Of a stretch of 64,000 nucleotides of DNA, positions 6 to 37,364 are shown one piece after another. The first letter of the stretch is position 1. Each line of letters opens with the position of its first letter. Location: IMG/VR virus record IMGVR_UViG_3300044797_000098, positions 1 through 64,000 of that record; one strand, 5' to 3'. The notes beneath the pieces are model-generated. The model saw only the letters and a program-made list of their open reading frames with translations. It made no database searches and had not been told where the DNA came from. The position numbers were made by a program, and so were the translations under genes.

Positions 6-1190
6 TTACCCCGACATAAATGTTCGGGGCTTGTTGCTCGTCCTGCGTTTAGCAGGATGTTGTTTTTGAACGGCAACAATAGGCTCATTGACAAGAGCCC
101 AAGATAGAACGGTTGTTATACCGTTCAAAAGATTGATTGCGGATACTGCACGGTTTTTGATATTGATTGAGGCATTGACGTCTGCGTTTGTGGCGAAGCC
201 ACATTGCAGGCAAAGAAAATCGCTCTGCGATTTTCGATTACCCTTTTCACAATGTCCGCAGTTGCTACACGTTCTGCTTGTATTACGAGGATCAACGAGT
301 GCTACTGGAACACCTGCTATCTGCGCCTTGTAAAGTATGAACTGCATCAGTTGATTGAATGCCCACTTACCGTGCTTGTCTCTATCCTTTTTTCTAACCG
401 TTTTCTTGAAAGATTGCAAATCTTCGATTGCAATTCCAACATTGTGCCTTTTCGCTTCCGAGACAACCCGTTTGCTTATGATATGATTCGTGTTTCTCTT
501 GAATTTTCCTTCCTTGTTAGATATTCGTTTGAGATGACGTTTTGCGGACTTCGTTCCGCGAGACTGTAATCGTTTGCGTAAATTATGATATCGTTGTCTG
601 ACTGTTTCTACTTCGTTGCCTACGAACTTGACACCGTTGTCCAGCGTGGCTAAATTGACAATACCAGAATCCATACCGATAAAATCGGTTGGCAGATATT
701 GTTCTGCTTCTGGAACTTCGACTACGGCTTGTAGAAAAAAATTACCATTATTGAAAACTAATGTAGCACCGTTTCTAATCTTTCTATTGTATAAGTTTGC
801 ATATGTTCCGAAAGCGATTGGTATCTTTTTCAATCTTCTATTGATAGAAGATATGGAAATCATATCAAGGTTCTTGCCGAAGGCAAGAACCCTTGCATCA
901 AAATCGATTGATGAGTGTTTTTGGAAACGATGTTGAACGGTCTTGTCGTTTTTATATGTTGCTGAAACGCGTGCTATTGCACGGATTACAAATTGAGATG
1001 GTAGAGATGGAAACTGTTTGCGAACTTGATGATAGATTGCCTTTTGCAGTTTGAATTTAGAAAAACAACGATTAGCAAAAGCATATTCCGAGATCGAATT
1101 ACAAGTAGAATTGAACACATACATCGTGTTCAATAACGATTGTTTTTCGTTTGCAGAAACTATTAGTTTGACTGGAACGGTTAGCAACAT
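6..1190 (-). CDS. tnpB: TnpB RNA-guided nuclease (IS200/IS605-type), copy 1
   Basis: 394 aa; RuvC motifs GMDSG, IEDL, NADVNA; CxxC-CxxC zinc finger (CSNCG...CLQCG); right-end hairpin overlaps the 3' end of the gene. Confidence 0.93.
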   Translation of the reverse strand: MLLTVPVKLIVSANEKQSLLNTMYVFNSTCNSISEYAFANRCFSKFKLQKAIYHQVRKQFPSLPSQFVIRAIARVSATYKNDKTVQHRFQKHSSIDFDARVLAFGKNLDMISISSINRRLKKIPIAFGTYANLYNRKIRNGATLVFNNGNFFLQAVVEVPEAEQYLPTDFIGMDSGIVNLATLDNGVKFVGNEVETVRQRYHNLRKRLQSRGTKSAKRHLKRISNKEGKFKRNTNHIISKRVVSEAKRHNVGIAIEDLQSFKKTVRKKDRDKHGKWAFNQLMQFILYKAQIAGVPVALVDPRNTSRTCSNCGHCEKGNRKSQSDFLCLQCGFATNADVNASINIKNRAVSAINLLNGITTVLSWALVNEPIVAVQKQHPAKRRTSNKPRTFMSG

Positions 1191-1226: not shown

Positions 1227-1488
1227 GAACAGAAAAGAAAATGAATAAAAACGTATGCTATAAAAACATTGACGCAGTTCCTCCCCGGGCTAAAAGCACC
1301 GGGGCTTCCCTGCTATAAGATCCGTGAAGGAACATCAATTTTGACTTTGAATATTTGCTGATTATACTGGTTCAGTGTTTCTCTAATTTGAACTGTTGCA
1401 TTAGTATCAAACTTACGCAATCTAACGAGCACATCTTGTAATACAGAACTCATCTTCATATCTCTTTTCTACTGTATTAGATACAGTG

Positions 1489-1562
1489 TGGAACCGGCGA
1501 GCAACGATCTCGCAACCTATCGGTTAAAAGCCGATTGCTACTGCCAATTGAGCTACGGTTCC
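1489..1562 (-). tRNA. tRNA-Lys(UUU), atypical D and T arms, no encoded CCA
   Basis: Acceptor stem GGAACCG/CGGTTCC; anticodon stem ATCGG/CCGAT with loop CTTTTAA; T stem GCGAG/CTCGC. Confidence 0.85.
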
Positions 1563-2599: not shown

Positions 2600-3844
2600 C
2601 GCAGGGATACCCTTGGCTTCAGTCAAGGGATGAACTGCGCTCCGTGAATTATTTTTGTGTTGCATACGATTTTTCTCAACTTTCTACTACTAATGATATA
2701 TATACTTACGATGCGAAGAACTTTTTCTTTCTATATGCTTGCTCCAAACGGATTTTTAGACTATCTAAAAACTTGTTCGGATATTTTTACTCGTCATGTG
2801 GAATGGGCATTTTCTAATAAATCTACTAATAAGGTTCAAGCACACAAAGACTTGTATCAAGTTATTCGTTCCGAATATCCAAACATACCTTCCAACATTT
2901 TACAAGCAACACGAGATCAAGCATTGGAAGCAGTTAGAAGATTGAAGTTCAAAATCAAACCTAAAAAGAAACCACATTCAGCGGTTAGATACGATGCCAG
3001 AACAATTACTCTTCGCGGTAATCTTTTGACTTTTTCGTGGTCAGGCAAACGAATTAGAACACTAATCAATTTACCACAACATTTTCAACAATACAAAAAT
3101 TGGAAGATGCAATCAGGAACTATTGGTTATGACAAGGTCAAAAAGCAACTAAAAATTAGCCTTATTTTTGAGGCACCAGATACGATACCTATTCAAAACT
3201 CAACAAGAATAGTAGGCGTAGATCGCGGATTATATAATATCGTCTCGTTGTCAGACGGTCAATTGTATAATGCGCGAACGGTAAGAAAAAAGAAACGCGA
3301 GTTTCTTTATACGAAACGACAACTCCAAGCAAAAGGCACTCGATCTGCTAAACGAAAACTAAAAGCAAGATCAGGTCGAGAAAAGCGGTTCAGCACGGAT
3401 ACCAATCATGTAATTAGTAAATGGTTAGTAAATCAGTCATATGATACATTCGTTTTTGAAGACTTGAAAAACATTAGCAAGCAACGCAAAGGCAAGGTAT
3501 TGAATGGATGGCTTTCTAACTGGACATTTTTTCAATTAGAACAATTCGTTTTGTATAAAGCATCAACATTAGGCAAACAGGTTGTCAAGGTAGATGCAAG
3601 ATATACAAGTCAAAAATGCTCTAATTGTGGAATTGTTGAAAAATCTAATCGCAATAAATCAAGATATTGTTGCAGTAAATGCGGATATATAGAACACGCT
3701 GATATCAATGCTGCAAAAAATATCAAGATGAATTATACTCTCTCGTTAGCAGTAATGAATAACGAGCAGGCACCAGTCAATGTGCCATATGTGTCGATAG
3801 CAATATTAGATACAAGCCCTTGCCTTTAGGCAAGGGTACTTGAC
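2600..3844 (+). mobile_element. Non-autonomous IS200/IS605-like element carrying tnpB only
   Basis: Left hairpin CGCAGGGATACCCTTGG...CAAGGGATGAACTGCG at 2600-2639; right end CCCTTGCC-TTTA-GGCAAGGG-TACTTGAC ending at 3844. Confidence 0.75.
2711..3829 (+). CDS. tnpB: TnpB RNA-guided nuclease, copy 2 (start reassigned to MRRTFSF at 2711)
   Basis: RuvC motifs GVDRG, FEDL, HADINA; zinc finger CSNCG...CSKCG; N-terminus parallels copy 3 (MQRTISI). Confidence 0.93.
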   Translation: MRRTFSFYMLAPNGFLDYLKTCSDIFTRHVEWAFSNKSTNKVQAHKDLYQVIRSEYPNIPSNILQATRDQALEAVRRLKFKIKPKKKPHSAVRYDARTITLRGNLLTFSWSGKRIRTLINLPQHFQQYKNWKMQSGTIGYDKVKKQLKISLIFEAPDTIPIQNSTRIVGVDRGLYNIVSLSDGQLYNARTVRKKKREFLYTKRQLQAKGTRSAKRKLKARSGREKRFSTDTNHVISKWLVNQSYDTFVFEDLKNISKQRKGKVLNGWLSNWTFFQLEQFVLYKASTLGKQVVKVDARYTSQKCSNCGIVEKSNRNKSRYCCSKCGYIEHADINAAKNIKMNYTLSLAVMNNEQAPVNVPYVSIAILDTSPCL

Positions 3845-3846
3845 AA

Positions 3847-4980
3847 TCATCGAGCAAAAGGCTTGCACACGCGAGCCTTTATGTCCTGAAAACGAAGCCT
3901 AATGCTTTTGCGTTGAAGCGTTGCAACCGACAATGGCTTCTTATCATTCGAGCACAACAAGAGATCAACCTCTTCTTTGTCTTTATACCATTTCGTTGGA
4001 GGAGCAAGGAACTTATCCATTAGCGCATCGAACACTTCTCGGAAGGCGCCCGAAGCAAAAAACGCTACAATCAACAGAACCACTGCGATACATATAATCA
4101 TGGTCATAAGACCAACCATGATTACTGCAACTCTATGGTTCAAAACCATCATAACTATCAGTGTAAAAACGATTGGCATGAACGGAAGCAAGCATATCTT
4201 GCGAAGGACATACCAAGCAATCTCACCAGCAGAATACTCCTTAATGTGGTCTTTGTCTTCTGGCAACTTACGAATGAAGAATGTTCCCTCATCATATGTC
4301 AGTCTAACACTATCGCCAAGATCATATCCTGAAAATGGATTCAGGTATTCGAACTTGAAACCTCTCCAACCAAAAGCCAATGCACTAACACCGCACATAA
4401 CAAACCGAACAATGAAGCTCAACAAAACCATTGGAACTTGGATGGTATAAGCAAACAATCTACGCTTACGGAAGTCGCATTGATCAACTGCCTTATTGCT
4501 GAACATCCAATTCACATACGTCTTTTCCAACTCGGAAGGTTCCTTTGCGAAACATTCCTTTGGAATGTCAAGAGATAGAACTGGTGCTGCATTCGGTGGA
4601 GTATTCGTTTCCGACATTGATGATGGAATAGACCACTCATTGTTATCGACAACCGTAGTTTCGTATATACCGTTGTGGGTTGTTAGATATGTTGTCCTTG
4701 CTGACTTTCGATCTTGCGCAGAAACGAATGCAAAAACGTTATTCTTTCCGGGCTTCTTGAACGTGATGTATGTCATTAGTTCCGTAAGTGGAACAACATA
4801 TCGCGTTTCGTATAATGTATATTGCCCGCCAATATTTTCTGCTGCGACAACAATCACAACTTGCGGATCAACAACACCATTATCAGTGAGCGTTTTGATC
4901 AGGTCTTTATCTACGCACCAACTGATTGCAATGCTACCAGTTGATATATCTGCGTTAGGGTCAATATGAAGTTCAAACAT
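3847..4980 (-). CDS. Membrane protein of unknown function
   Basis: 377 aa with several hydrophobic helices in the C-terminal half. Confidence 0.75.
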   Translation of the reverse strand: MFELHIDPNADISTGSIAISWCVDKDLIKTLTDNGVVDPQVVIVVAAENIGGQYTLYETRYVVPLTELMTYITFKKPGKNNVFAFVSAQDRKSARTTYLTTHNGIYETTVVDNNEWSIPSSMSETNTPPNAAPVLSLDIPKECFAKEPSELEKTYVNWMFSNKAVDQCDFRKRRLFAYTIQVPMVLLSFIVRFVMCGVSALAFGWRGFKFEYLNPFSGYDLGDSVRLTYDEGTFFIRKLPEDKDHIKEYSAGEIAWYVLRKICLLPFMPIVFTLIVMMVLNHRVAVIMVGLMTMIICIAVVLLIVAFFASGAFREVFDALMDKFLAPPTKWYKDKEEVDLLLCSNDKKPLSVATLQRKSIRLRFQDIKARVCKPFAR

Positions 4981-7329: not shown

Positions 7330-7425
7330 TTACAGTATTTTCAATAGGACAATTACTGCTCCGCAGGAGCTTCGCTCTTCTACGATTATTGTGCCACATA
7401 TGAGTTCAAGATTTGTGGTGCTCAT
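7330..7425 (-). CDS. Small hydrophobic peptide interrupted in frame by the 24-nt element (not in ORF track)
   Basis: MSTTNLELICGTIIVEERSSCGAVIVLLKIL; removing the element restores a continuous hydrophobic helix IIVVIVLLKIL. Confidence 0.5.
   Translation of the reverse strand: MSTTNLELICGTIIVEERSSCGAVIVLLKIL
7356..7379. repeat. 24-nt dispersed hairpin element, copy C
   Basis: Identical copy. Confidence 0.95.
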
Positions 7426-7761
7426 TGGTTATGCTTTTCCTTCTTCGAACCAAACTTCTCTTTGAGTTCATGCACAGCCCAACGGGCAAGTTCGTTTCCA
7501 ATTGTTGTTAGAATTGCAGTTGCAGTCATAACAATGATGTAAGGGCGCCAACTATCTTTCCAGTCTTCTTGTGGATTGAACATCACTTATGTGATTCCAT
7601 TGTCTCTTTTGCCAATTCAATCAATCTAACTGGAACGCTTCCGTCCTCGGCATATAACCCGAGAAAATCACAAACTGCATCGGCAAGCAACTCTACATTA
7701 CCGTCAAAATTGTTGCAGTTAGCACGCAACCAACCCTTTGCTTTTCGTTCCTCAACTGGCT

Positions 7762-8854: not shown

Positions 8855-10519
8855 GTGTCCAGTGTAGGATACACTACTACATTAGTGTCATTCACTTACC
8901 AATCCCATCAATCACCCTGGGAATCGTTCGCGTCAACCACTCCGCTTGCTCAACTGTTAGAACCATCGACTGAATCATCTTACCAACGTCATCATACGAA
9001 CGAACTTCGATCAAACCCAGTCCATCAAAATCTTCGCTGGCTTGAAGATACTCGCCAGTATTATTACGATACAATCGATACATAATCTCTTCGTTATACG
9101 TTGCCATTGTCATTCTCCATCTACTGATTGTGGCTCATCATGGTAAGTGCCATCATCCCATCGATATACACCAGTGTATATAACGAGCTGTCCTTTGTTG
9201 TCTGTATCCAACTCGCATGGGGCTACACCACTAACCAGATCGATGATGCCGTCTTGAACTTCTGCTATGGTATATGTAGCCATGTTAATTCAACTCTCCA
9301 ACCATCACAACAACAGAAGTAATCGTAGTCGGAACAATTACATCACCAGCATCATATTGACCAAGCAATTGAACATCGTTCGTCCATACAATCAACACTG
9401 GTTGTCCGACAACAATCGGATTGCTGATCTCACGATACGTTTTCCAATTACCATCATTGCCAAGTCGTTCCGTGCCAGCACACAAACCTGACACTCGTCG
9501 AACTTGCTTATTAGTTTCATTGACTTCGTAGATACTACCTGACTTTGTTTCGAAACGCATTTGATTTATTCCTGTGGATATGGGGTATTCTTGAATGGAA
9601 CAACTTCGTGATGACCTACATCCTTCGAAGGAAAGATATACGTCTTTGGGTATGATTCTGTGTGTCCACACGTAGGACATGGGTGATGGGCGCCAATCAG
9701 AACATACGTAGCAGGCTTTTCTTCCAACTCTACATAGCCATCAATGCGATTACCATCGTCATCATGACTGCCATTCGTTTCATCTACTTGATTCCACCAT
9801 ACTGCAATATTGGAACACACGTGGCAGATGATGTCAGAGTAGTCGTATGCATCTCTGGTGAAGTAATGACCTTTGGCACATAGGTATTGTGTTGCCTTCG
9901 AAACTCAATTAGCACCTCCAATAACATTCAATGCATACCCATACGTATCAAGTGCTTGTCTTGCTTTCCTTGCAACATCACGATCCCCATCGATGATGCT
10001 CTCATTGAGATATGTCTCACGATGACGACTGGAAAGAATGCGAATGGTCTGAACGAGAATGGCTTTGGATTGGATTGTCGAATACATCGTTGATCCTTTA
10101 ATTGAAGGAGTTGTAGATTGCCAACAGACACATTGCGATCAGAACAAGGATTTCAAACGTTATGATTGCTTGGACTATTTTGTATGCCATGCGTATGTGC
10201 TCATTGATTGCTGGCATTGAATGGATTGCATTTGACAATACCATTGTTAGCACACCAATCATTTGGTGCCACTATCACAGTGTATCCTGCTGGACACTTC
10301 TTTGCCATACAAGCCACCCAATCAGTTTCGGAACATCTATATCTAGTGCTCTACGATTGATTGTAATCTCACATAGAGCGTTGCTAACTTTTTCCGGTTA
10401 GCATCGGACACCACACTAATTTTCGTCAGGTGGATTACCCCACGACTTCTTCTATGAAGAATGGTCGAACAAGCAAGAGGGATGCTACTATTTCATCCCT
10501 CCTGCTCATTCATTGTCTT

Positions 10520-10795
10520 TCAGAGTTCAACCGTTTCCTTGGCCTTCGGTTCATTCTGCCCACGCAGAATCCAACGGGTCTTACCGTTGATCGGACGCGA
10601 CAGAATGGTGAGGGTCTTTCCGTTGCGAGACACCCGACGAACCTCGCCGAGTTCAGCAGCAATCTTCTCAATGAGAGCGCTCTTGCGATCGGTCAGTTCC
10701 GCAAGTTGCGCTTTGAGATCCGCTTCGAGAGCAACGGTCTCATTGTCGAGGTTGTCAATCTGAGAGAAAAGGGCACTAACTGCTTGCTTGTTCAT
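10520..10795 (-). CDS. Coiled-coil hypothetical protein, paralog of 43520..43825
   Basis: Heptad-like N-terminus, then GKTLT...LRG...K..VEL shared with the paralog. Confidence 0.65.
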   Translation of the reverse strand: MNKQAVSALFSQIDNLDNETVALEADLKAQLAELTDRKSALIEKIAAELGEVRRVSRNGKTLTILSRPINGKTRWILRGQNEPKAKETVEL

Positions 10796-10941
10796 TGTTG
10801 TTTTCCTTTGTTGTTGTGTGTCTTCGTGTCAGTTTCGTTGTTGTTTGTTGCGGGGCGTTATTGCCTCGCGATGGGTAGAATATAGCAACGGTTCGAAAAC
10901 CGTCAAGTGCGCAAGCGAAGAAAAGATCGGGACGGAAGGTT

Positions 10942-11208
10942 TCATAGGACTGGCGAGCACTTATGCGTGCCCGACTTGTTAGAGCGGAAGCAAGACGGAC
11001 AGCACGCATAGGGGAACCACGTTGCAATCGGAGTGTCGCACCGAGCGCAAGCGTTCGTCTCTCCTCTATTGTCGGGCTGGACGTTCTCGCCTACATCGCA
11101 CACCGGACAATACAGTTCCTCACAGATTTCCAGCAAGGGTGAATTACAAGCATCGCACATACCACTACGAATATGGTTGCGTGTGTGGATGTAAGATACA
11201 GTGCCCAT
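10942..11208 (-). CDS. Small zinc-finger protein
   Basis: Four CxxC pairs. Confidence 0.55.
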   Translation of the reverse strand: MGTVSYIHTRNHIRSGMCDACNSPLLEICEELYCPVCDVGENVQPDNRGETNACARCDTPIATWFPYACCPSCFRSNKSGTHKCSPVL

Positions 11209-11210
11209 AA

Positions 11211-11429
11211 TTATTCCTTGCAGTGCTTAAGGCACAAGTTGTATTCTCTTTGAACAAACTCAACGCACTCTTGAACTTCTTTACAGTCTTGCAGTTTCGG
11301 GCTCCACGTTGAGATACACTTCTCTTGGCACGTCTGCTTGCCTGCTTCGACATTCGTAGATGCGAATGCAAACACGATGATACCAATGATCAATACGAAC
11401 GATGCGATGTTAGATTGTGTTTTAGTCAT
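11211..11429 (-). CDS. Small secreted or membrane-anchored Cys-rich protein
   Basis: N-terminal hydrophobic helix, CxxxC motifs. Confidence 0.55.
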   Translation of the reverse strand: MTKTQSNIASFVLIIGIIVFAFASTNVEAGKQTCQEKCISTWSPKLQDCKEVQECVEFVQREYNLCLKHCKE

Positions 11430-11773
11430 TGAATTGCTCCGAGGTCATCACCAAAATCAAGAGAGTTAGTGTCATCTGCTACTTCTGCAATCGTAGCATA
11501 ACCAGAATAGTATCCATTACTGGCATCTTATGTCCAACAAACTCGTTGAACATCTGATTATCGTTTTCACCATCACAAAAATCATCACGATCGAAGTCGG
11601 TGTATTTTGTGAAGTCAATTGGATTACTCATTGCAATTCCTTTCGATTATACCAACAACCTCTTTGCTGACATCTTACATACGTTGATTTAGTTGTTAAG
11701 ATTGTATTGGGATTGATTATGAGAACGTATTCGCCACAGTATGATATGTGTTGAAGCAGTTCGCTATATCCCA

Positions 11774-12079
11774 TTATACATCAAACTCCAACAAACAAGC
11801 CAATGCACCAGTCGTCAATCGTTCCATCATCGGAACGGTCGGACGGGAATGAACTTCTTCCAATAGACTATGATCGACAAGCAGATCAAATCCATTGATC
11901 TTCTTCACGAGATCGAATGGAGTATGATCATCCAACGAGATCTCGTCTTCAATCAACTCATCATCATTGACATCGATGAACGGATCGCTTTCGATCTTCG
12001 CAACTGCCTTGAACTCTTGCGTTCGCTTTGCAGGACGAGGGGGTGTTTTTACTGATAGCAACGTTGTCATCTTAACCAT
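11774..12079 (-). CDS. Small acidic protein directly downstream of the terminal CRISPR repeat (likely start MVKMTT)
   Basis: GGAG Shine-Dalgarno precedes the ATG at 12079; D/E-rich middle. Confidence 0.6.
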   Translation of the reverse strand: MVKMTTLLSVKTPPRPAKRTQEFKAVAKIESDPFIDVNDDELIEDEISLDDHTPFDLVKKINGFDLLVDHSLLEEVHSRPTVPMMERLTTGALACLLEFDV

Positions 12080-12129
12080 TTCTCCATTTCGTCTCAATCT
12101 TTAGGGTGTTGAGCAACCGTTATACCTAC

Positions 12130-12158
12130 AATATACTCACACTATACAATTTTGTCAA
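12130..12158 (-). promoter_or_regulatory. Sigma70-like promoter inside the array, upstream of the last repeat
   Basis: TTGACA (12153-12158)-17 nt-TATATT (12130-12135). Confidence 0.7.
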
Positions 12159-12164
12159 GACTCA

Positions 12165-12225
12165 CGTCATATAAACTTATGAGCCTGAGTTTCGATCTTA
12201 TAGGGCGTCGAACAACCATTACTAC
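12165..12225 (-). ncRNA. crRNA-like regulatory RNA (variant repeat plus a guide against the cas12 promoter)
   Basis: Variant repeat keeps its stem through compensatory changes; the first 11 guide nt TCAGGCTCATA equal 14465-14475, next to a TTG PAM. Confidence 0.8.
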
Positions 12226-12484
12226 TCCTCTCAATCTTTAGGGTGTTGAGCAACCATTACTACATGATGGCATTCATCTTTTAGTTGATGGAGGATTGTC
12301 AGTCTCAATCTTTAGGGTGTTGAGCAACCATTACTACCTGATAGTTCTCACTGCATCGGAGCCGGATAATGCCGTCTCAATCTTTAGGGTGTTGAGCAAC
12401 CATTACTACCAACTTGATAACAAACGTATCTATGGAAAAGAACGATTAGTCTCAATCTTTAGGGTGTTGAGCAACCATTACTAC

Positions 12485-12605
12485 CAGTGTCGAAAATTAC
12501 TTCGTGATTTCAACCACTTACGATAGCGTTTTCGAGCACCTCTTCCTGACCCGTCTCTTGGCAACTATACTAACCCAAGAGACGGGTTTGTCAAGTGGCA
12601 CCTAA
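12485..12605 (-). promoter_or_regulatory. CRISPR leader with promoter and inverted repeats
   Basis: TTGACA-16 nt-TAGTAT (12567-12594); perfect 13-bp inverted repeat 12549-12561/12575-12587; 7-bp inverted repeat TCGAAAA/TTTTCGA at 12490-12535. Confidence 0.65.
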
Positions 12606-14402
12606 CTATGCGACTTCCATAAGGGTTTCCTCATTGCGAGCACCCTCGGGGGTTTTGGCGTCGCCTGACCGCTCGCGCTCAAGTCCGCGGTCAAGGATAT
12701 TGTTTGATGCATTCTCATCTCGATCATGTTCAACACCACAACCTTGACAAAAATACTTCAACATACCTTTGATATCATCATTGTAATAATGACATATTCC
12801 GCATTCTTTTGAAGTGCCACGAGCATCAACTTCGATATATCCTTCTGTCTTTCCTCTGCTACGCAATGCGTTCTTACACGCATTACGAAACTCACTTGGT
12901 GCAGTCAGTTGCCTATTAGTGCTTCCAGCATTACCTCGTGCAAGGTTAGACAGATTGATGTCCTCGAAAACAATCGAACCGTATTGATCAGCAAGTTTTG
13001 CTGCCAACTTACGATACTCTTCGTTTCGATATCCAACTCCGCGATTGCGTTGCGAAGAAGCCCACTGCCATAGATGGTGATCATGATATCTCCATCCCGC
13101 AATACCAGTTCCTTTTGTTAGTGTTTTCGTTTCTTTATTCCACGAACCACTAATACCATAAATCTCTTCATCTCCCGCAAAACGATTGGTTGACCATTGT
13201 TTCACCAATCTTGCAAGACGACCTTGCGATCTCCACTTATCCAAGTGTTCACATTCTTTCGTGAGCCATTCGGGCAAGTTTTCTTTTCCAGTCATCCATT
13301 CAACTAATGATTTACGAACAGCATCGAACTCCTTATCTCGAATGCTTTCGATTTCGTTAGCCTTTGATAGTGCTGCAATGACACTTGATGGGACACGAAT
13401 ATCCCATTCCTTATTATCAGTTCCTTTACCATATCCAATGCGAACCGATCCGTCTTGCATATCGCGCCAACCAAGATCAATACCAACGCACGATTGATTG
13501 TTGTGTGCAATTGTATTTTGATTGTCATTGAACGTAATAGACACCGTCCAATGTTCTCGTGCTCCAATCTTATTGCAACATACCTGTACAACCTGAATAA
13601 CGCTTCCAGTAGGAATATCACGATGATATACCATTGGAAACTCTGCCCAGATAGGCTTACGATCATTGTCGGTTCCAATACGGAGACGGAACAATCGCAA
13701 GTCTTTCTTACCAACCTTACGCATCGTTCCATCTACCTTTACAATTGGAGCAGGCATAGGAATGATCCGAACCATCTTGCTTGATGCTTCAATGCCAATG
13801 ACCTTATCAATAGGTTCATTGGGTTGAAACTGCTGAATACCAACACGACCTTCACCAAGATATGAACGGAAACGAGGATCATTCGGTTCAACACCATCAT
13901 ACAATGGCATCTTACGAGTTTTCTGAAACGCATCCTCAATCAACATATACGTTCCATACCACGGAGCAATATCACTCTTGCGAACCTCTGCAATCTTTAG
14001 GTTCGCTTGCTGATCAATAGCAGTTCGTTTTGCTTTGATATCCTCATTGCTACGAAGCAATCTGCGTGCTTCAATAAGTTTCGAGTTGATTTCTTTGCGA
14101 GCCTTCTTTGCATCCCTCAGTTCTTGCTTCATCTCATCGGTTGCAACGCGAGTGCGAGCATCCGCATTAGCTCGTTTGTTCCTCTTGTCGAACGCAATAA
14201 CCTTATCATCCGCTTCCTTTACTGCGACTTCCAGTTCAGGAATATCACCTGCTTGTCGTTCAATGGTTCGGATTTCATTTCTCCTCCATCGTTCAATCTC
14301 AATAAGTTTGTTTTGGTAATTGTGTCCCTTTCTAATCTGCTCCATAACAAGATCATGGTTCAGTGTGGGTGCCAGAAGTCCTAACTTGAAGGTGCGTGTC
14401 AT
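12606..14402 (-). CDS. cas12m: Compact type V CRISPR effector, Cas12m-like (subtype V-M / V-U1)
   Basis: 598 aa next to the array; long coiled-coil REC insertion, WYGTY and GEGRVGIQ segments, RuvC-I GIDLGWR, KWRSQGRL, RuvC-II VFEDINL, TAPSEFR, zinc finger, RuvC-III DRDENA; collinear with the Cas12m proteins as I recall them. Confidence 0.8.
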   Translation of the reverse strand: MTRTFKLGLLAPTLNHDLVMEQIRKGHNYQNKLIEIERWRRNEIRTIERQAGDIPELEVAVKEADDKVIAFDKRNKRANADARTRVATDEMKQELRDAKKARKEINSKLIEARRLLRSNEDIKAKRTAIDQQANLKIAEVRKSDIAPWYGTYMLIEDAFQKTRKMPLYDGVEPNDPRFRSYLGEGRVGIQQFQPNEPIDKVIGIEASSKMVRIIPMPAPIVKVDGTMRKVGKKDLRLFRLRIGTDNDRKPIWAEFPMVYHRDIPTGSVIQVVQVCCNKIGAREHWTVSITFNDNQNTIAHNNQSCVGIDLGWRDMQDGSVRIGYGKGTDNKEWDIRVPSSVIAALSKANEIESIRDKEFDAVRKSLVEWMTGKENLPEWLTKECEHLDKWRSQGRLARLVKQWSTNRFAGDEEIYGISGSWNKETKTLTKGTGIAGWRYHDHHLWQWASSQRNRGVGYRNEEYRKLAAKLADQYGSIVFEDINLSNLARGNAGSTNRQLTAPSEFRNACKNALRSRGKTEGYIEVDARGTSKECGICHYYNDDIKGMLKYFCQGCGVEHDRDENASNNILDRGLERERSGDAKTPEGARNEETLMEVA

Positions 14403-14449
14403 TGGAGTTTTCTTTCGTAGTTGAGTGTTGTTGTCTCTTGCATACCACC

Positions 14450-14478
14450 AATATAATCACGCCCTATGAGCCTGACAA
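14450..14478 (-). promoter_or_regulatory. Sigma70-like promoter of the cas12 gene, overlapped by the regulatory target
   Basis: TTGTCA (14473-14478)-17 nt-TATATT (14450-14455). Confidence 0.75.
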
Positions 14479-14999
14479 GGGGTCGCATCAAAAAAAACTG
14501 ATTGTGGTAGCAGGTAGGAGATCATCGCACATCATCATGCCCCCATCCTTACTTGCGCGCAGACTTCACAAAAGAGAACCGTTGCGACTTGACCACTAAC
14601 ATTAGTGGTATCGAGATCAATACAAGACAGATCAATGAATGAGTTTGAGATATCGTTTCCACAATGTTTGCAGTTCATAACTATATCCTTTGTTTGTTTT
14701 TGATTTTCCCGCCCTTGTGCCAGAATGAACGGACACAATCGTCGAGCACAACCGCAGTTTTATAGGCGTTCAAGTGAATATGAATGAACGTCTTGATTGC
14801 AGTGATTATTGCGCTGAACATTTTGTGGGATTGATTGGTTGATGTTTTACGAACAACCTATCCGTGTTAGGATCGTAGAACGCCATCGCAATACCAGATA
14901 CAAGATTGCTATTGAGCATTTGATCTAATACCGCTTTCGCTTGCTTATCACCAGCGAGAATTAGGGCGTAGAGAGTGTTTTCTGAAAGACGCATTTGAA

Positions 15000-15752
15000 T
15001 TACCTATTGAGCATTCTCGAATTGCCAGCACCAAGACTGGCACCAAGATGCACGGATTTGCCTTGTTGTTGTCCCATGCCGAATGCATTACGATCTACTT
15101 GGCATTGCGAATTAGTCTTCGAGACACGAAGACCAGAATGCATCTTGAACATTGCATCCGTTGCTTCTTTCTCGCGCGCATTGATCTTGACAATCGCAGT
15201 GCTACTGGCTTGTTGCTGAACCTCTGCGCGACTTGCACTCAACTGCATACGCACACCGGACACGAAACCAATGCAGTATGATTGCACGAACACACGTCCC
15301 TTACCCTTGGCTTCAATGGCAGAGAGACGAGTGCATTCAGCAGAAAGATACGCGAACATATAACGCGTTATGCCGATGTCAGACCGTCGTCCAACAAGAC
15401 GATAGCGAGACACTTTGCGTCCATTAGAATACACAGCATTGGTGTCGAGATCAACCTTCATATCAACGGTCGTATCATTCCACACTGCGCATCCATAATG
15501 AGAAGCAAGAGCCATAATAAGAGACGATTTCCATTGTGTGATTTTCCCTGTCTCGTAGATATAGCCATCATCTTCTTCGATGGGCTCGGACACATTCCCA
15601 TCGGTTCCTTCCAACTCCGCAGTCGAAAGACGATATTGATCCATCAACTTGTTCGCCATTGCAGCAGCAACTGCTGCTTCATTGGCATTAGAACTCTGGC
15701 TCAATGCCAGCAGTTTCTTGACCTTCTCAATCACAGCATTGATATCAGACAT
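15000..15752 (-). CDS. DUF2786-family phage protein
   Basis: N-terminal IEKVKKLLALS...NEA..A..MA.KLM.QY.LS signature. Confidence 0.8.
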   Translation of the reverse strand: MSDINAVIEKVKKLLALSQSSNANEAAVAAAMANKLMDQYRLSTAELEGTDGNVSEPIEEDDGYIYETGKITQWKSSLIMALASHYGCAVWNDTTVDMKVDLDTNAVYSNGRKVSRYRLVGRRSDIGITRYMFAYLSAECTRLSAIEAKGKGRVFVQSYCIGFVSGVRMQLSASRAEVQQQASSTAIVKINAREKEATDAMFKMHSGLRVSKTNSQCQVDRNAFGMGQQQGKSVHLGASLGAGNSRMLNR

Positions 15753-17173
15753 TATTAATCTCCTATTTCAATATCATCGATCATATCGGTATCGGCTTGA
15801 ATATCCCACTGATTAAAATCCTCAACATCAAGCGCCTTCAAACCATTAAAAAAGGTTGAAGCGATCGATGCACTTCCAAGTTATTCAATGAACGCTCAAC
15901 CAACGAGCGGAATTGTTCTATCGTTAGGTTCTTGTTATTGCACGATACAGAGAACACAATCGGAACAGTAATCCGCATTACACGATTGTGTTGCGCAGTA
16001 AACCTACCTCTTGACCATTGTCATTCTCCCTTTGAATATGACACGCACTATATCCAATCACAACTCCACCAAGCAACGCAATCGCACAAGCGCATAGTGC
16101 GGTGCCGAGAGTGATTAGAGTTTCAAGTTGATTATACATTGTTAGTTCTTAAAATCCGGGCGTTTAATGAACAACACAATCGTCTCTTTGTTTCCGTGTT
16201 GTTCAAGCAGACTTTTCAGCCAACTCGACTTGAATGTTAGCACATGGCCATGAGACACGGTCGAACAAGCAACACCATTGCGATTAACAAGTTCCATCAT
16301 AAAATCCACGGCATCATTCTTCTTATCGTCGGACATTGACATTCTCCGTTATGAGATATTATGATTGGTCTTGGTGTAATTATACGATCCAATGTTGGAT
16401 GCATTCTTGTCTGCAATCGCAACGATTACTGCACGCGCAATCACAACAGAAACGGTATCGTTTTCCTTCTCTGCTTTCATTAGGACATTGAATGCGAGAC
16501 CGTATAATTCCTGATCTTTTGCTGACATCATTGCGATTTCTCCCGAAGACATTCCTCAACCTCTTCATTGGCAACTTTAACAAGATCGTGATCAACTTCG
16601 CTTACATCAACTCTCTTTCGAGTTATTGCTTCTTTTCGTTCTATTCGTTTTAGACCAGCATTCATTAGTTGCTCGCTTAATCCATTAAGCAGTGATAGCA
16701 TACATATCACAAGCGATACGGGCCATATAAAACATACTAATGACCAAGATGGATATCTCCTGTTATCATACTTCTGAAAAGTCTTGGGGTAAAAATACGC
16801 AGTTCCATAAAACATGCTAACCGCAATGCCAATATATGCTTCAATGTAATTCGCAATGCTCATAGCCATCTCCTACTGCTTTGCTCAATACGACACCATA
16901 TCTCTATGATGTCGGGAAGAACAAGTCAATTACTATTTGGAATTGCTTGGCTTACGCGCGTTCGTAAGACCTTCATTCGCCTTCGCGAGACCCGTCTGCA
17001 CACCGTCAAGCGCAACCGTGCTGGCGGTATCAACCTGCGTTCCAACGGTCTTATTGACCGACGCTTCCGTCTTTGCGTCCATCTTGCTATGGACAACGAG
17101 AGTAATAACTGCACCAACAACAACACCTGCAACAAACCTTAGCATTGTGATATTCCTTTGTTAGATTGTTTGA

Positions 17174-17485
17174 TTACAAGGCGAAACCAGACAAGAACAC
17201 ATTCGTGATAGGATCACGATCCGTGATTGCTTCGCTTTTGTCTTCCCACTTATACTCGGCGAAGCAACCCTTATACTCCTCAAAACCTTCCTCGGCAATC
17301 TCACCACTCTCGTCAAGAGCAGTGTTGAGAAAACGAAGTCCATCATTCATCTCATCTACATTGATGAACTTGTCCTGCGCCTGATGCAGATACTCGAATT
17401 GCTTCGCAGAGATTTTGTCATTCGGAATGTAATAGAGTTCAGTGCGCTCGGGAATACATTCGAAGATCAATAGCGTGTATGACAT
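17174..17485 (-). CDS. Hypothetical acidic protein
   Basis: 103 aa in the co-oriented small-gene array. Confidence 0.55.
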   Translation of the reverse strand: MSYTLLIFECIPERTELYYIPNDKISAKQFEYLHQAQDKFINVDEMNDGLRFLNTALDESGEIAEEGFEEYKGCFAEYKWEDKSEAITDRDPITNVFLSGFAL

Positions 17486-18087
17486 TTAGTTGCTCTCTTT
17501 CTTTGCAGATCGATAGTATGCACGCTTCGCATCAGGATGATACGAAACCTTATAGCACTTCTCACCGCGACGAGTAATGTGGAAAGGAAGACACTCGTAG
17601 CATTCAAGAGACGAACAATCCATCGAAACGATCACACATCCGTAATCGCGTGTGATTAGTTCGTTGATGATGATTGTTGGTTGAGGAATGATTTGGTTCA
17701 TTACGAACTCCGTTTTGCTTTTATCAGATATATCGCAAGACTACCGCACATTGCGGATATACACAACTCACACACCTGATTAAAACGAGACATTGGCACG
17801 AACAAGAAAAGCGCAAGTGCTTCAATGGAAGCGAACGCGTTCAAGGCAATAACGATTTTGGCTCCTCGGCTCAGGATACATCTCCATTCGTCTTCGTAAT
17901 ATATGCACGAAGAGCGCTAACACCAGCATCATTCGTTGTTAACAATTCGCCTTCTGCATCGATTGTCTTTGTGATTAGACCATCAGCAATCAGATCATTA
18001 GCCCACATGTTTTCATTACTAGACAAGTCGCATTCAACCGAATGTTTGAGACATCGCAACAAGACAACGGCTTCTTGCTCATTGATA

Positions 18088-36155: not shown

Positions 36156-37364
36156 ATGCAACGAACGATCTCTATCAAAATTGACGCACCAGCAGAGTTT
36201 TTAGATTACCTAAAAGCTTGCAACGAGCTATACAGCAGGTATGTTGAATGGTGTTTCGAGACCAAGAGCTACAATAAGAATAAATCTCATACCGAGCTAT
36301 ATGAAAAGTTTCGTCAGGAGTTTCCAAGTATCAATTCTGCCACCATTCAGTGTATTAGAGATAATGCACTTGAAAGCGTCAAGGCATTGAAATTCAAATT
36401 CAAGCCGAAAAAGAAGCCACATTCTCATATTCGTTTTGATAAGAGAACGATCGCTCTTCGAGGTGATCAACTATCGTTTGCATGGTCAGGTGATCGTATC
36501 AAACAGATCATAAAGATACCAGAGTTTTTCAAAAAACGATATGGATCTTGGAAGTTTCAGGCAGCAACAATAGGCTATAATAAGCATAAGAAGCAATTCG
36601 TTGCTAATCTGATTTTTCAATCAACTGCTCCGCAGGAGCTTCGCTCTTCTGCTCCGCAGGAGCTTCGCTCTTCTGCTCCGCAGGAGCTTCGCTCTTCTTC
36701 ACCTGAAAAGAAAGGTGATCGTGTAGTTGGTATCGATCGTGGACTGTATAACATAGTGTCTCTATCTGATGGTTTCAAGTATGCTTCCAATCAGGTCAGA
36801 AAAGTGAAACGAGAAGTCTTGTTTCTCAAAAAGCAACTTCAAACAAAAGGCACCCATAGTGCTAAACGCAAATTGAAAGCGTTGTCTTGCTATGAGAAGC
36901 GGTTTAGTTTGAATGTCAATCATATCATCAGTAAATTGTTAGTTTCGTTGCCATACGATATTTTTGTTCTCGAAGACTTGAAAGGTATTCGTAAGCAAAA
37001 ATCAAAAGGCAAACGACTAAACAAGTGGCTTGCTAACTGGTCATTTTGGCAATTAGAGGCTCTTCTGGGATATAAGGCAGAGATATTTTGCAAGCAAATT
37101 GTCAAAGTCGATGCTCGATATACCAGTCAAAAGTGCTGCAATTGCGGTCAAGTAGAAAAAGCCAATCGTGATGGCTCACATTACCACTGTGAGCGTTGTG
37201 GATTTAGGTGTCATTCGGATACGAATGCTGCTAAAAATATCCGCAATAACTATCTCATCTCTGCTGCTGAAAAACAGAAGGCAGAGCAGGCTATGTGTCA
37301 ATTAGCCGAATGCTTCGTATCGAAAGATACAGAAACAAGCCCCGTTGCTTTTAGCACGGGGTAA
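36156..37364 (+). CDS. tnpB: TnpB RNA-guided nuclease, copy 3, with a 3x APQELRSS insertion
   Basis: GIDRG, LEDL, HSDTNA RuvC motifs and zinc finger; right end CAAGCCCCGTTGCTTTTAGCACGGGGTAATTGA. Confidence 0.93.
   Translation: MQRTISIKIDAPAEFLDYLKACNELYSRYVEWCFETKSYNKNKSHTELYEKFRQEFPSINSATIQCIRDNALESVKALKFKFKPKKKPHSHIRFDKRTIALRGDQLSFAWSGDRIKQIIKIPEFFKKRYGSWKFQAATIGYNKHKKQFVANLIFQSTAPQELRSSAPQELRSSAPQELRSSSPEKKGDRVVGIDRGLYNIVSLSDGFKYASNQVRKVKREVLFLKKQLQTKGTHSAKRKLKALSCYEKRFSLNVNHIISKLLVSLPYDIFVLEDLKGIRKQKSKGKRLNKWLANWSFWQLEALLGYKAEIFCKQIVKVDARYTSQKCCNCGQVEKANRDGSHYHCERCGFRCHSDTNAAKNIRNNYLISAAEKQKAEQAMCQLAECFVSKDTETSPVAFSTG
36625..36696. repeat. Three tandem copies of the 24-nt hairpin element
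   Basis: (CTGCTCCGCAGGAGCTTCGCTCTT)x3. Confidence 0.95.

Follow-up and report, generated by a model that had tools for sequence, protein, structure and literature searches.

Cas12m descends from TnpB, and C-rich PAMs are used by some Cas12m enzymes. In TnpB systems of the IS200/IS605 type, the omega-RNA scaffold ends at the border of the element and the flanking DNA serves as the guide. The RNA-protein architecture of TnpB has been described (PMC10097598). The Cas12m enzymes studied so far bind DNA beside a PAM, TTN in these cases, and do not cut it, even with a DED triad (PMC11013384, PMC10442227); DED-type orthologues were likewise found to be non-cutting (PMC11013384). Cas12m silences transcription from promoter sites and processes its own pre-crRNA, and pairing with the target involves a 12-bp intermediate and a full duplex of 17 bp (PMC11013384, PMC10442227). 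The scaffold of Cas12m2 is 36 nt long and its first 7 nt are disordered (PMC10442227).

CreR and related crRNA-like regulators have been shown for types I-B, I-E and V-A (10.1101/2023.03.10.532045; PMC10120712). CreR is guided by partial matches that adjoin the -35 element, also when Cas12a is the effector (10.1101/2023.03.10.532045). CreTA, as far as it is cited in the same CreR report, combines a small gene of a CRISPR locus with an adjoining crRNA-like RNA. Racr, the RNA anti-CRISPRs, are solitary repeat units that phage genomes carry under a promoter (PMC10651486), and hijacking of host Cas proteins by crRNA-like RNAs of viruses has been described (10.1101/2024.10.29.618823). The papers searched contained no description of a CreR-like unit for type V-M.

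The phage Cas12m module and its borders

The window analyzed here is a stretch of 64,000 nt, positions 1 to 64,000 of the IMG/VR virus record IMGVR_UViG_3300044797_000098. The record is 406 kb long, 95% complete and present in peat and bog metagenomes. Close DNA relatives were found neither in the phage collection nor, by single-protein search, in IMG/VR. The genes and repeats considered all lie on the minus strand, in the 5' to 3' order cas12m, leader promoter, R1-R4, R5, pseudo-spacer, R6 and an open reading frame (ORF) of 98 aa.

The cas12m gene (12606-14402, minus strand) encodes a type V-M effector of 598 aa, which was aligned with 48 relatives (alignment A1). In a PDB sequence search, Cas12m chains matched the effector at full length, over residues 6-570 (23vw, E 1e-47), and further solved Cas12m structures matched with E 1e-30 and, for Cas12m2 (8hio), E 1e-21. 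The Pfam domain of the protein is Cas12f1-like_TNB, and a RuvC-like triad, D309/E480/D562 (DED), is kept across the subfamily. By homology the effector is a Cas12m, of the DNA-binding type V-M family. The preliminary description of this DNA had spoken of a Cas12, which was right as to the kind of effector and is corrected to Cas12m by the PDB chains and the TNB domain. PAM-dependent DNA binding without cleavage would be expected of the phage enzyme from its family.

About 100 related loci were gathered, and the array lies downstream of the gene in nearly all of them. The phage locus resembles the described type V-M systems in its homologous effector, in the array downstream of the gene, in a repeat of ~36 nt that ends in GAC and forms a pseudoknot scaffold with a dispensable 5' end, and in the TTN that adjoins the single inferred target. 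It differs from them in that the effector belongs to a phage-borne subfamily with 25-35% identity to the studied enzymes and a DED triad, and in the absence of adaptation genes. No Cas1 was found in the 406-kb phage genome.

The canonical array (12228-12484, minus strand) consists of four repeats of 36 nt, R1 (12484-12449), R2 (12409-12374), R3 (12337-12302) and R4 (12263-12228), the last base of R4 being altered. The three spacers between them, S1-S3, are 39, 36 and 38 nt long. The leader promoter was placed by a promoter scan at 12567-12594 (minus strand), ~80 nt before R1 and inside a 12-bp inverted repeat. Its position is shared with two relatives, L041 and L049, and the leaders were aligned (A3). 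The repeats of the family end in GAC and have a 28-nt core in common. When a two-helix pseudoknot was laid over 42 distinct family repeats, 97.9% of the cells were paired, with 99 double-sided changes, compared with at most 43.5% paired in controls with slid positions. The ~36-nt repeats adjoining the phage gene form this pseudoknot scaffold, as is typical of a type V-M array.

The borders of the module were located by two comparisons. DNA homology to a CRISPR-less relative, L010, stops near 14735 and resumes at 12064. In a module variant of 90-95% identity from a bog run, X3, coverage is limited to about 14.7-12.12 kb and the flanks are different, with 255 nt of unrelated sequence behind the terminal repeat. 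Because the L010 and X3 comparisons independently give the same borders, the module is, on these alignments, a discrete type V-M unit of ~2.65 kb, extending from about 14735 to 12091 and having the end of R6 as its right border. Between the two borders L010 has 124 nt and a 71-aa gene, so that it does not offer a clean empty site, and a module-free joint was found in none of the assembled contigs of four runs. A truncated homologue of a 76-aa gene of the relative (14690-14821, minus strand) marks the left border, where the L010 homology stops. The left part of the module holds a 47-aa ORF with a CxxC...CxxC pattern (14535-14678, minus strand), inside the stretch shared with the X3 variant.

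The module has replaced part of a conserved small-gene operon in the 406-kb peat phage. Its contents are the tiny zinc-ribbon-like ORF, the cas12m promoter, cas12m, the leader promoter, four repeats with three spacers, and R5, pseudo-spacer and R6. The borders show that whole Cas12m units, together with a putative regulatory guide and an outward promoter, move between phage backbones.

The gene beyond the right border had been predicted to encode an acidic protein of ~100 aa, and the ORF (11774-12070, minus strand) indeed encodes 98 aa with a pI of 4.5. Only two relatives of the protein were detectable among 1.8 billion representatives, P0049 (77% identical) and P0050 (44%). The protein gave no Pfam family, PHROG family or Atlas lead, and its AlphaFold model was poor (pLDDT 57, pTM 0.16). 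A 206-nt RNA contig of low depth from a peat metatranscriptome (11840-12045) lies inside the ORF and shows presence in an RNA library only.

The contigs of the 77% homologue (L010) carry a DUF2786/DUF7168 gene, three small genes, the homologue and further shared genes in the same order, without cas12m and without an array. The homologue overlaps the stop of the preceding gene, to which it is translationally coupled. By this comparison the 98-aa ORF is a phage backbone gene, and because the homologue sits in the same gene order without CRISPR, the link between ORF and repeat arose by insertion of the module. This argues against the earlier suggestion that the protein is a toxin, a dedicated anti-CRISPR or an accessory factor. 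Conservation of the gene neighborhood had been named as a check on the same proposal, and it came out unfavorably, the order around the ORF being kept in the CRISPR-less relative and the module variant lying in other flanks.

The end of the array

Repeat alignment and pseudoknot covariation revealed a variant repeat, R5 (12189-12225, minus strand), 2 nt past R4. R5 differs from the array repeat by 5 substitutions and 1 inserted base. Four of the substitutions compensate each other in two stem pairs, and the fifth leaves a G-U pair in place, a pattern with a chance probability of ~3e-4. Judged by this pattern, R5 is a selected variant with an intact Cas12m handle and not a decayed copy. The preliminary description had taken R6 for a lone terminal repeat. 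This has to be revised, since R5 and a 62-nt pseudo-spacer bearing a promoter separate R6 from R1-R4; R5, the match of the pseudo-spacer to the cas12m promoter and the borders of the module had all been missed.

The pseudo-spacer (12127-12188, minus strand; 62 nt) comprises a seed, TCAGGCTCATA (12188-12178), a hairpin-prone stretch and an internal promoter. Its positions 1-11 are identical to 11 nt of the cas12m promoter, where they are preceded by TTG and overlap the -35 element. The cas12m promoter, TTGTCA-17-TATATT (14450-14478, minus strand), was the second-best site of the promoter scan with 10/12 consensus positions. The operator proposed from this prefix match consists of the PAM TTG at 14478-14476 and the protospacer seed TCAGGCTCATA at 14475-14465, also on the minus strand.

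The match was compared with those of other spacers. None among 437 spacers of relatives matched the sequence upstream of its own cas12m with a prefix of this kind, and in cross-locus controls 1 of 16124 comparisons reached 11 nt. A TTN PAM together with a prefix of at least 11 nt within the own locus was found, among 500 spacers, only for the phage pseudo-spacer and for one spacer of L007; the chance expectation, by our own estimate, is ~0.1. When mismatches were allowed, 3/443 in own loci reached at least 10/12 as against 2/3444 in the controls, and the sole 11/12 match was that of this window.

Conservation of guide and target was evaluated as for CreR. In L006, whose Cas12m is 57% identical, the promoter region is only about half identical overall, yet the exact block CCCCTTGTCAGGCTCATA of the target is kept, and the identity with the phage promoter stops exactly at the end of the seed. 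L115, L116 and the other relatives showed no promoter match of the R5 type. The pattern of repeat end plus seed is absent from the rest of IMG/VR, and a scan of IMG/VR with the operator 15-mer gave chance matches only, none of them near a Cas12m-type repeat. The guide/operator pair is known from one genome; the L006 contig stops inside its first repeat, and L233 is a contig without upstream sequence.

Some related structures were seen in passing. The first 30 nt of the pseudo-spacer (window 12158-12188, minus strand) can fold, the seed pairing with TATGACGTGAG. L116 has a terminal variant repeat (3914-3949) after a 45-nt gap, with a compensatory stem change from CTCTA/TAGAG to CTCG/CGAG; it resembles R5, without the promoter match. 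In L007 the sequence that follows the last repeat, TATCTAATCATA, recurs in inverted orientation (7403-7460) with a PAM of TTA, directly before the ATG (7461) of a Kelch-like gene. The inverted copy surrounds an inner 8-bp hairpin and may be a Cas12m roadblock site or an RNA/terminator hairpin. The candidate PAMs come from inferred targets only, TTG in the phage module and TTA in L007.

The last repeat, R6 (12091-12126, minus strand), forms the right border of the module, and repeat alignment showed that both pseudoknot helices are kept. Over the last 28 nt it agrees with the array repeat at every position (28/28), and its four differences all fall within the first 8 nt (P = 0.0012). The observation that this repeat is intact in its hairpin and 3' end was confirmed by the identity of the 28-nt scaffold. 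The degeneracy ascribed to its 5' end is real as far as the four differences go, but GGTAT there matches the start region of the cas12m promoter, and the true repeat part of R6 begins at AACGG. GGTAT, which follows the -10 element, has a counterpart in L006, GGTGT. The first nucleotides of R6 are dispensable: the first 7 nt are disordered in Cas12m2 (PMC10442227), and in several relatives conservation of the repeat is limited to 28-33 nt. Since the helices are kept, in R5 by compensatory changes, both R5 and R6 are intact Cas12m handles.

The internal promoter, TTGACA-17-TATATT, was found on the minus strand at 12130-12158, where it had been described before, with its -35 element at 12158-12153 and its -10 element at 12135-12130 in the promoter scan. 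It ends 3 nt before R6, and the predicted start of transcription (~12125-12121) falls within the first nucleotides of R6, in agreement with the claim that transcription would begin at the start of the last repeat. With 11/12 consensus positions it outranks every other sigma-70-like site between 10.5 and 16 kb and is the only one of at least 11/12 in this interval; shuffled sequences gave 0.155 such sites, and the 406-kb genome has 44. The cas12m promoter, the leader promoter and the internal promoter are the three best promoter-like sites of the region. No terminator-like sites were found on the minus strand inside the module.

The best local alignment of the internal promoter within the region is with the cas12m promoter (26/38 identical), CTTGTCAGG...GTGATTATATTGGTGGTAT of the former aligning with CTTGACAAA...GTGAGTATATTGTAGGTAT of the latter. 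Outside the hexamers the identity is 15/31; 167 other promoter-like sites averaged 7.9 here, and only one of them reached so high a value. The positions of the internal promoter that correspond to the operator match the seed at 5/11. The internal promoter looks like a copy of the cas12m promoter that lacks the operator and may re-drive the backbone genes cut off by the insertion. An internal promoter before repeats is not a family trait, as none of at least 10/12 was found in the relatives, this window excepted; L016 has a weaker look-alike.

R6 is directly followed by GAAATGGAGAAATGG. The leader of the ORF, which is also the would-be guide of R6, is GAAATGGAGAAATGGTTAAG (12071-12090, minus strand) and consists of backbone sequence. 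As had been reported, a Shine-Dalgarno sequence (SD; GGAG, 12085-12082) and the ATG (12070) stand in place of a spacer. In guide numbering after R6, the SD occupies +6 to +9 and the ATG begins at +21, 20 nt past R6. There are two in-frame ATGs, at 12079 and at 12070, and the second is homologous to the start of the relatives. A six-codon upstream frame, MEKWLR (window 12087-12067, minus strand), ends in a TGA that overlaps the ATG of the ORF (ATGA).

Explanations for the R5-R6 unit

The explanation to which we give an about even chance is that R5, pseudo-spacer and R6 constitute a CreR-like self-repressing mini-array at the end of the Cas12m module, combined with an outward promoter copy. R5 and the first nucleotides of the pseudo-spacer would yield a crRNA-like RNA. 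This RNA would bring Cas12m, a binder and not a cutter, to TTG+TCAGGCTCATA on the -35 element of its own promoter, and the result would be a CreR-type negative feedback on cas12m in which real crRNAs could compete. The second half of the pseudo-spacer would read outward and restore transcription of the interrupted backbone operon. The match that starts exactly at position 1 of the pseudo-spacer, has TTG as its PAM and overlaps the -35 element argues for this explanation, as do the operator block kept in L006 with identity ending at the end of the seed, the compensatory changes of R5 and the intact helices of R6. On the other hand, 11 bp is less than the 17 bp that give robust binding of Cas12m2, the PAM is an inferred one for this orthologue and some Cas12m use C-rich PAMs, and the DED triad of the phage enzyme would be compatible with DNA cutting. 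Moreover, a duplication of the promoter region could have left the seed and the promoter copy behind without any selection for a guide, the guide/operator pair was seen in a single genome, and the sole RNA evidence is the low-depth contig inside the ORF.

The unit shares with CreR a repeat that diverged from its cognate and still folds, the handle structure of R5 being kept by two compensatory pairs and one wobble. In both, a spacer-like part with a short PAM-flanked match beside the -35 element of the effector promoter follows, here the 11-nt prefix with TTG on the -35 of cas12m, and a second repeat closes the unit. The length of the match is that of the tracr-L autorepression of Cas9, where it is 11 bp; it is 11 nt in the phage module. 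Unlike in CreR, the effector binds without cutting, so that a partial match would not be needed against self-cleavage. The phage unit also differs in its position, being fused to the trailer end of the array with no separate promoter whereas CreR lies upstream of cas, in being carried by a phage system, and in its 62-nt pseudo-spacer that houses a promoter. An assignment to CreTA, as far as CreTA is cited in the CreR report, was rejected: the pseudo-spacer matches the cas12m promoter and not the promoter of the ORF, the internal promoter agreeing with the seed at the 5/11 positions given above, and the ORF is also present in a relative without CRISPR.

If the self-repression were true, a guide of R5 that represses cas12m would extend crRNA-like self-regulation to the binding-only type V-M and to phage-carried CRISPR systems; the papers searched contained no case of this kind. 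It would also represent a compact natural feedback circuit, made of a promoter with an 11-nt operator and an operator-less copy of it. Cas12m is already under development for such circuits.

As a further part of the same explanation, R6 would act on the mRNA that it precedes. The downstream mRNA would carry the whole Cas12m scaffold at its 5' end, with the SD behind it, either because the promoter fires at the start of R6 or because Cas12m cuts read-through RNA at R6. Free, abundant Cas12m would be expected to bind this leader and to damp translation of the first backbone gene. Capture of the mRNA leader by Cas12m, burying the SD, is plausible; that the bound scaffold would hold the first ~17 nt, including the SD, is an inference from Cas12m structures (PMC10442227). 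In our view such an effect would be a side product of how the border is built, which may since have gained a use, and a coupling of the ORF to Cas12m through the R6 leader would not make the ORF a part of the CRISPR system. The leader is a simple case for asking whether a crRNA scaffold in the 5' UTR allows a Cas effector to control an mRNA in cis. It is doubtful that R6 evolved as a cis-acting Cas12m-binding leader in order to couple translation of the 98-aa protein, as a toxin, anti-CRISPR or accessory factor, to the level of Cas12m. An intact scaffold immediately after a strong promoter, an SD at +6 to +9 of the guide and the restriction of all R6 changes to dispensable 5' nucleotides are consistent with this idea, and in L008, L009, L116 and L007 the next gene also lies 10-60 nt past the last repeat. 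However, short intergenic gaps are normal in phage genomes, the homologue of the ORF occurs in the same gene order without CRISPR and coupled to its upstream gene, the module variant sits in other flanks, and the protein has neither a family nor a good model.

That R5, the long gap and R6 are debris of an old array end without special function, the promoter match being fortuitous or serving downstream genes, is unlikely. Recombination, spacer loss or a duplicated promoter piece could have produced such debris, units with no spacer, a short spacer or a long gap are common in the arrays of the family, and arrays probably change by recombination in this genome since it has no Cas1. The uniqueness of the seed match to this genome also fits. 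Decay, however, leaves unexplained the two compensatory pairs of R5, the 28/28 core of R6 beyond the diverged R5, the PAM-flanked match on the -35 that starts at position 1, and the operator block kept in L006. A different role for R6 is suggested by TnpB, which likewise has an RNA scaffold at the element border with flanking DNA as its guide: R6 would take the flanking backbone as guide, and Cas12m would bind and silence siblings that lack the module. In both the L010 and the X3 comparison R6 ends at the right border of the module, R6 has its own promoter, the genome contains five further TnpB-like genes in addition to a Cas12m that descends from TnpB, and the RBS of the 71-aa gene in L010 reads cTTG|GAAATGGAGAA, where a TTG PAM stands before the first 11 nt of the R6 guide. 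The target in module-free phages would be TTG+GAAATGGAGAAATGGTT; the carrier would be immune, the repeat having replaced the PAM, and siblings would carry TTG before the same sequence. This is a single comparison in which TTN would precede the site by chance in 1 of 16 cases, the 11-nt identity is plain flank homology, and this one possible PAM-bearing site is not a clean empty site. Unlike TnpB, the phage Cas12m belongs to a non-cutting family, and a binding-only enzyme could not drive homing by cutting. The border-guide explanation is accordingly rated as very unlikely, and it is just as improbable that R6 is an omega-RNA-like weapon between phages, silencing siblings at the operon RBS and also tying the operon of the carrier to Cas12m. 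Finally, a decoy of the Racr kind, in which the promoter-driven solitary repeat soaks up Cas12m from the host or a rival phage, has hardly any probability. Racr has the same layout, a phage-borne repeat under its own promoter, and viral RNAs that hijack host Cas proteins set a precedent, but the R6 scaffold is the repeat of the phage's own array, 0.5 kb from its own cas12m, and the own effector would be drained too. The locus was not assigned to Racr, as the cognate cas gene and array lie in the same module and the repeat precedes an mRNA; the solitary-repeat decoy of the preliminary description is weakened in the same way.

Array content and genomic surroundings

In runs X1 and X3, contigs were seen that carry other spacers next to the same repeats (window 12372-12442), and array content therefore varies within and between peat and bog samples, without adaptation genes. 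Spacer-less tandem repeats or very short spacers (5-28 nt) occur in many arrays of the family (L008 2043-2104; L052 1542-1590; L061, L075, L080, L057 and L025). L008 has two 5'-truncated repeats only, with no spacer, and its next gene begins 10 nt on.

Elsewhere in the phage genome, neither S1-S3 nor the two pseudo-spacers are matched in full or nearly in full. For S1, prefix matches of 9-11 nt preceded by TTT were seen at genome positions 221061, 368515 and 102935 (plus strand), all in coding regions; the several prefix matches of S1, 9-13 nt long and in coding regions, are taken as composition or chance. No protospacers for S1-S3 were found in IMG/VR. A 20-mer of S2 matches one Sideroxydans MAG (L232 5614-5634) with a 21-nt prefix, antisense to a TPR protein gene and with a PAM of CCC. 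An assignment of the host from this match was dropped, as ~1 such match is expected by chance in 596 Gb. Sideroxydans is a genus of iron-rich wetlands.

The inverted repeat of the leader promoter (window 12545-12600, minus strand) has a 12-bp stem and holds the -10 box in its loop. The leader promoter of L115 (2000-2040) likewise lies in an inverted repeat, with a 10-bp stem of different sequence. Additionally, the leaders of four loci, including L006 (6755-6815), share GCTCGAAAAC...CGCAAGT, which resembles half a repeat.

The five TnpB-like ORFs that the phage genome carries besides cas12m are ~390-415 aa long and have the Cas12f1-like TNB domain. They are located at window 6-1190 (minus strand), 2657-3829 (plus strand) and about 37050-37241 (plus strand), and at genome positions 306464-306661 and 329069-329260. 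A tRNA-Lys (UUU) was found at window 1488-1562 (minus strand). The G+C content at window 9000-18000 is 43-44%, in flanks and module alike, compared with 35.6% for the whole genome.
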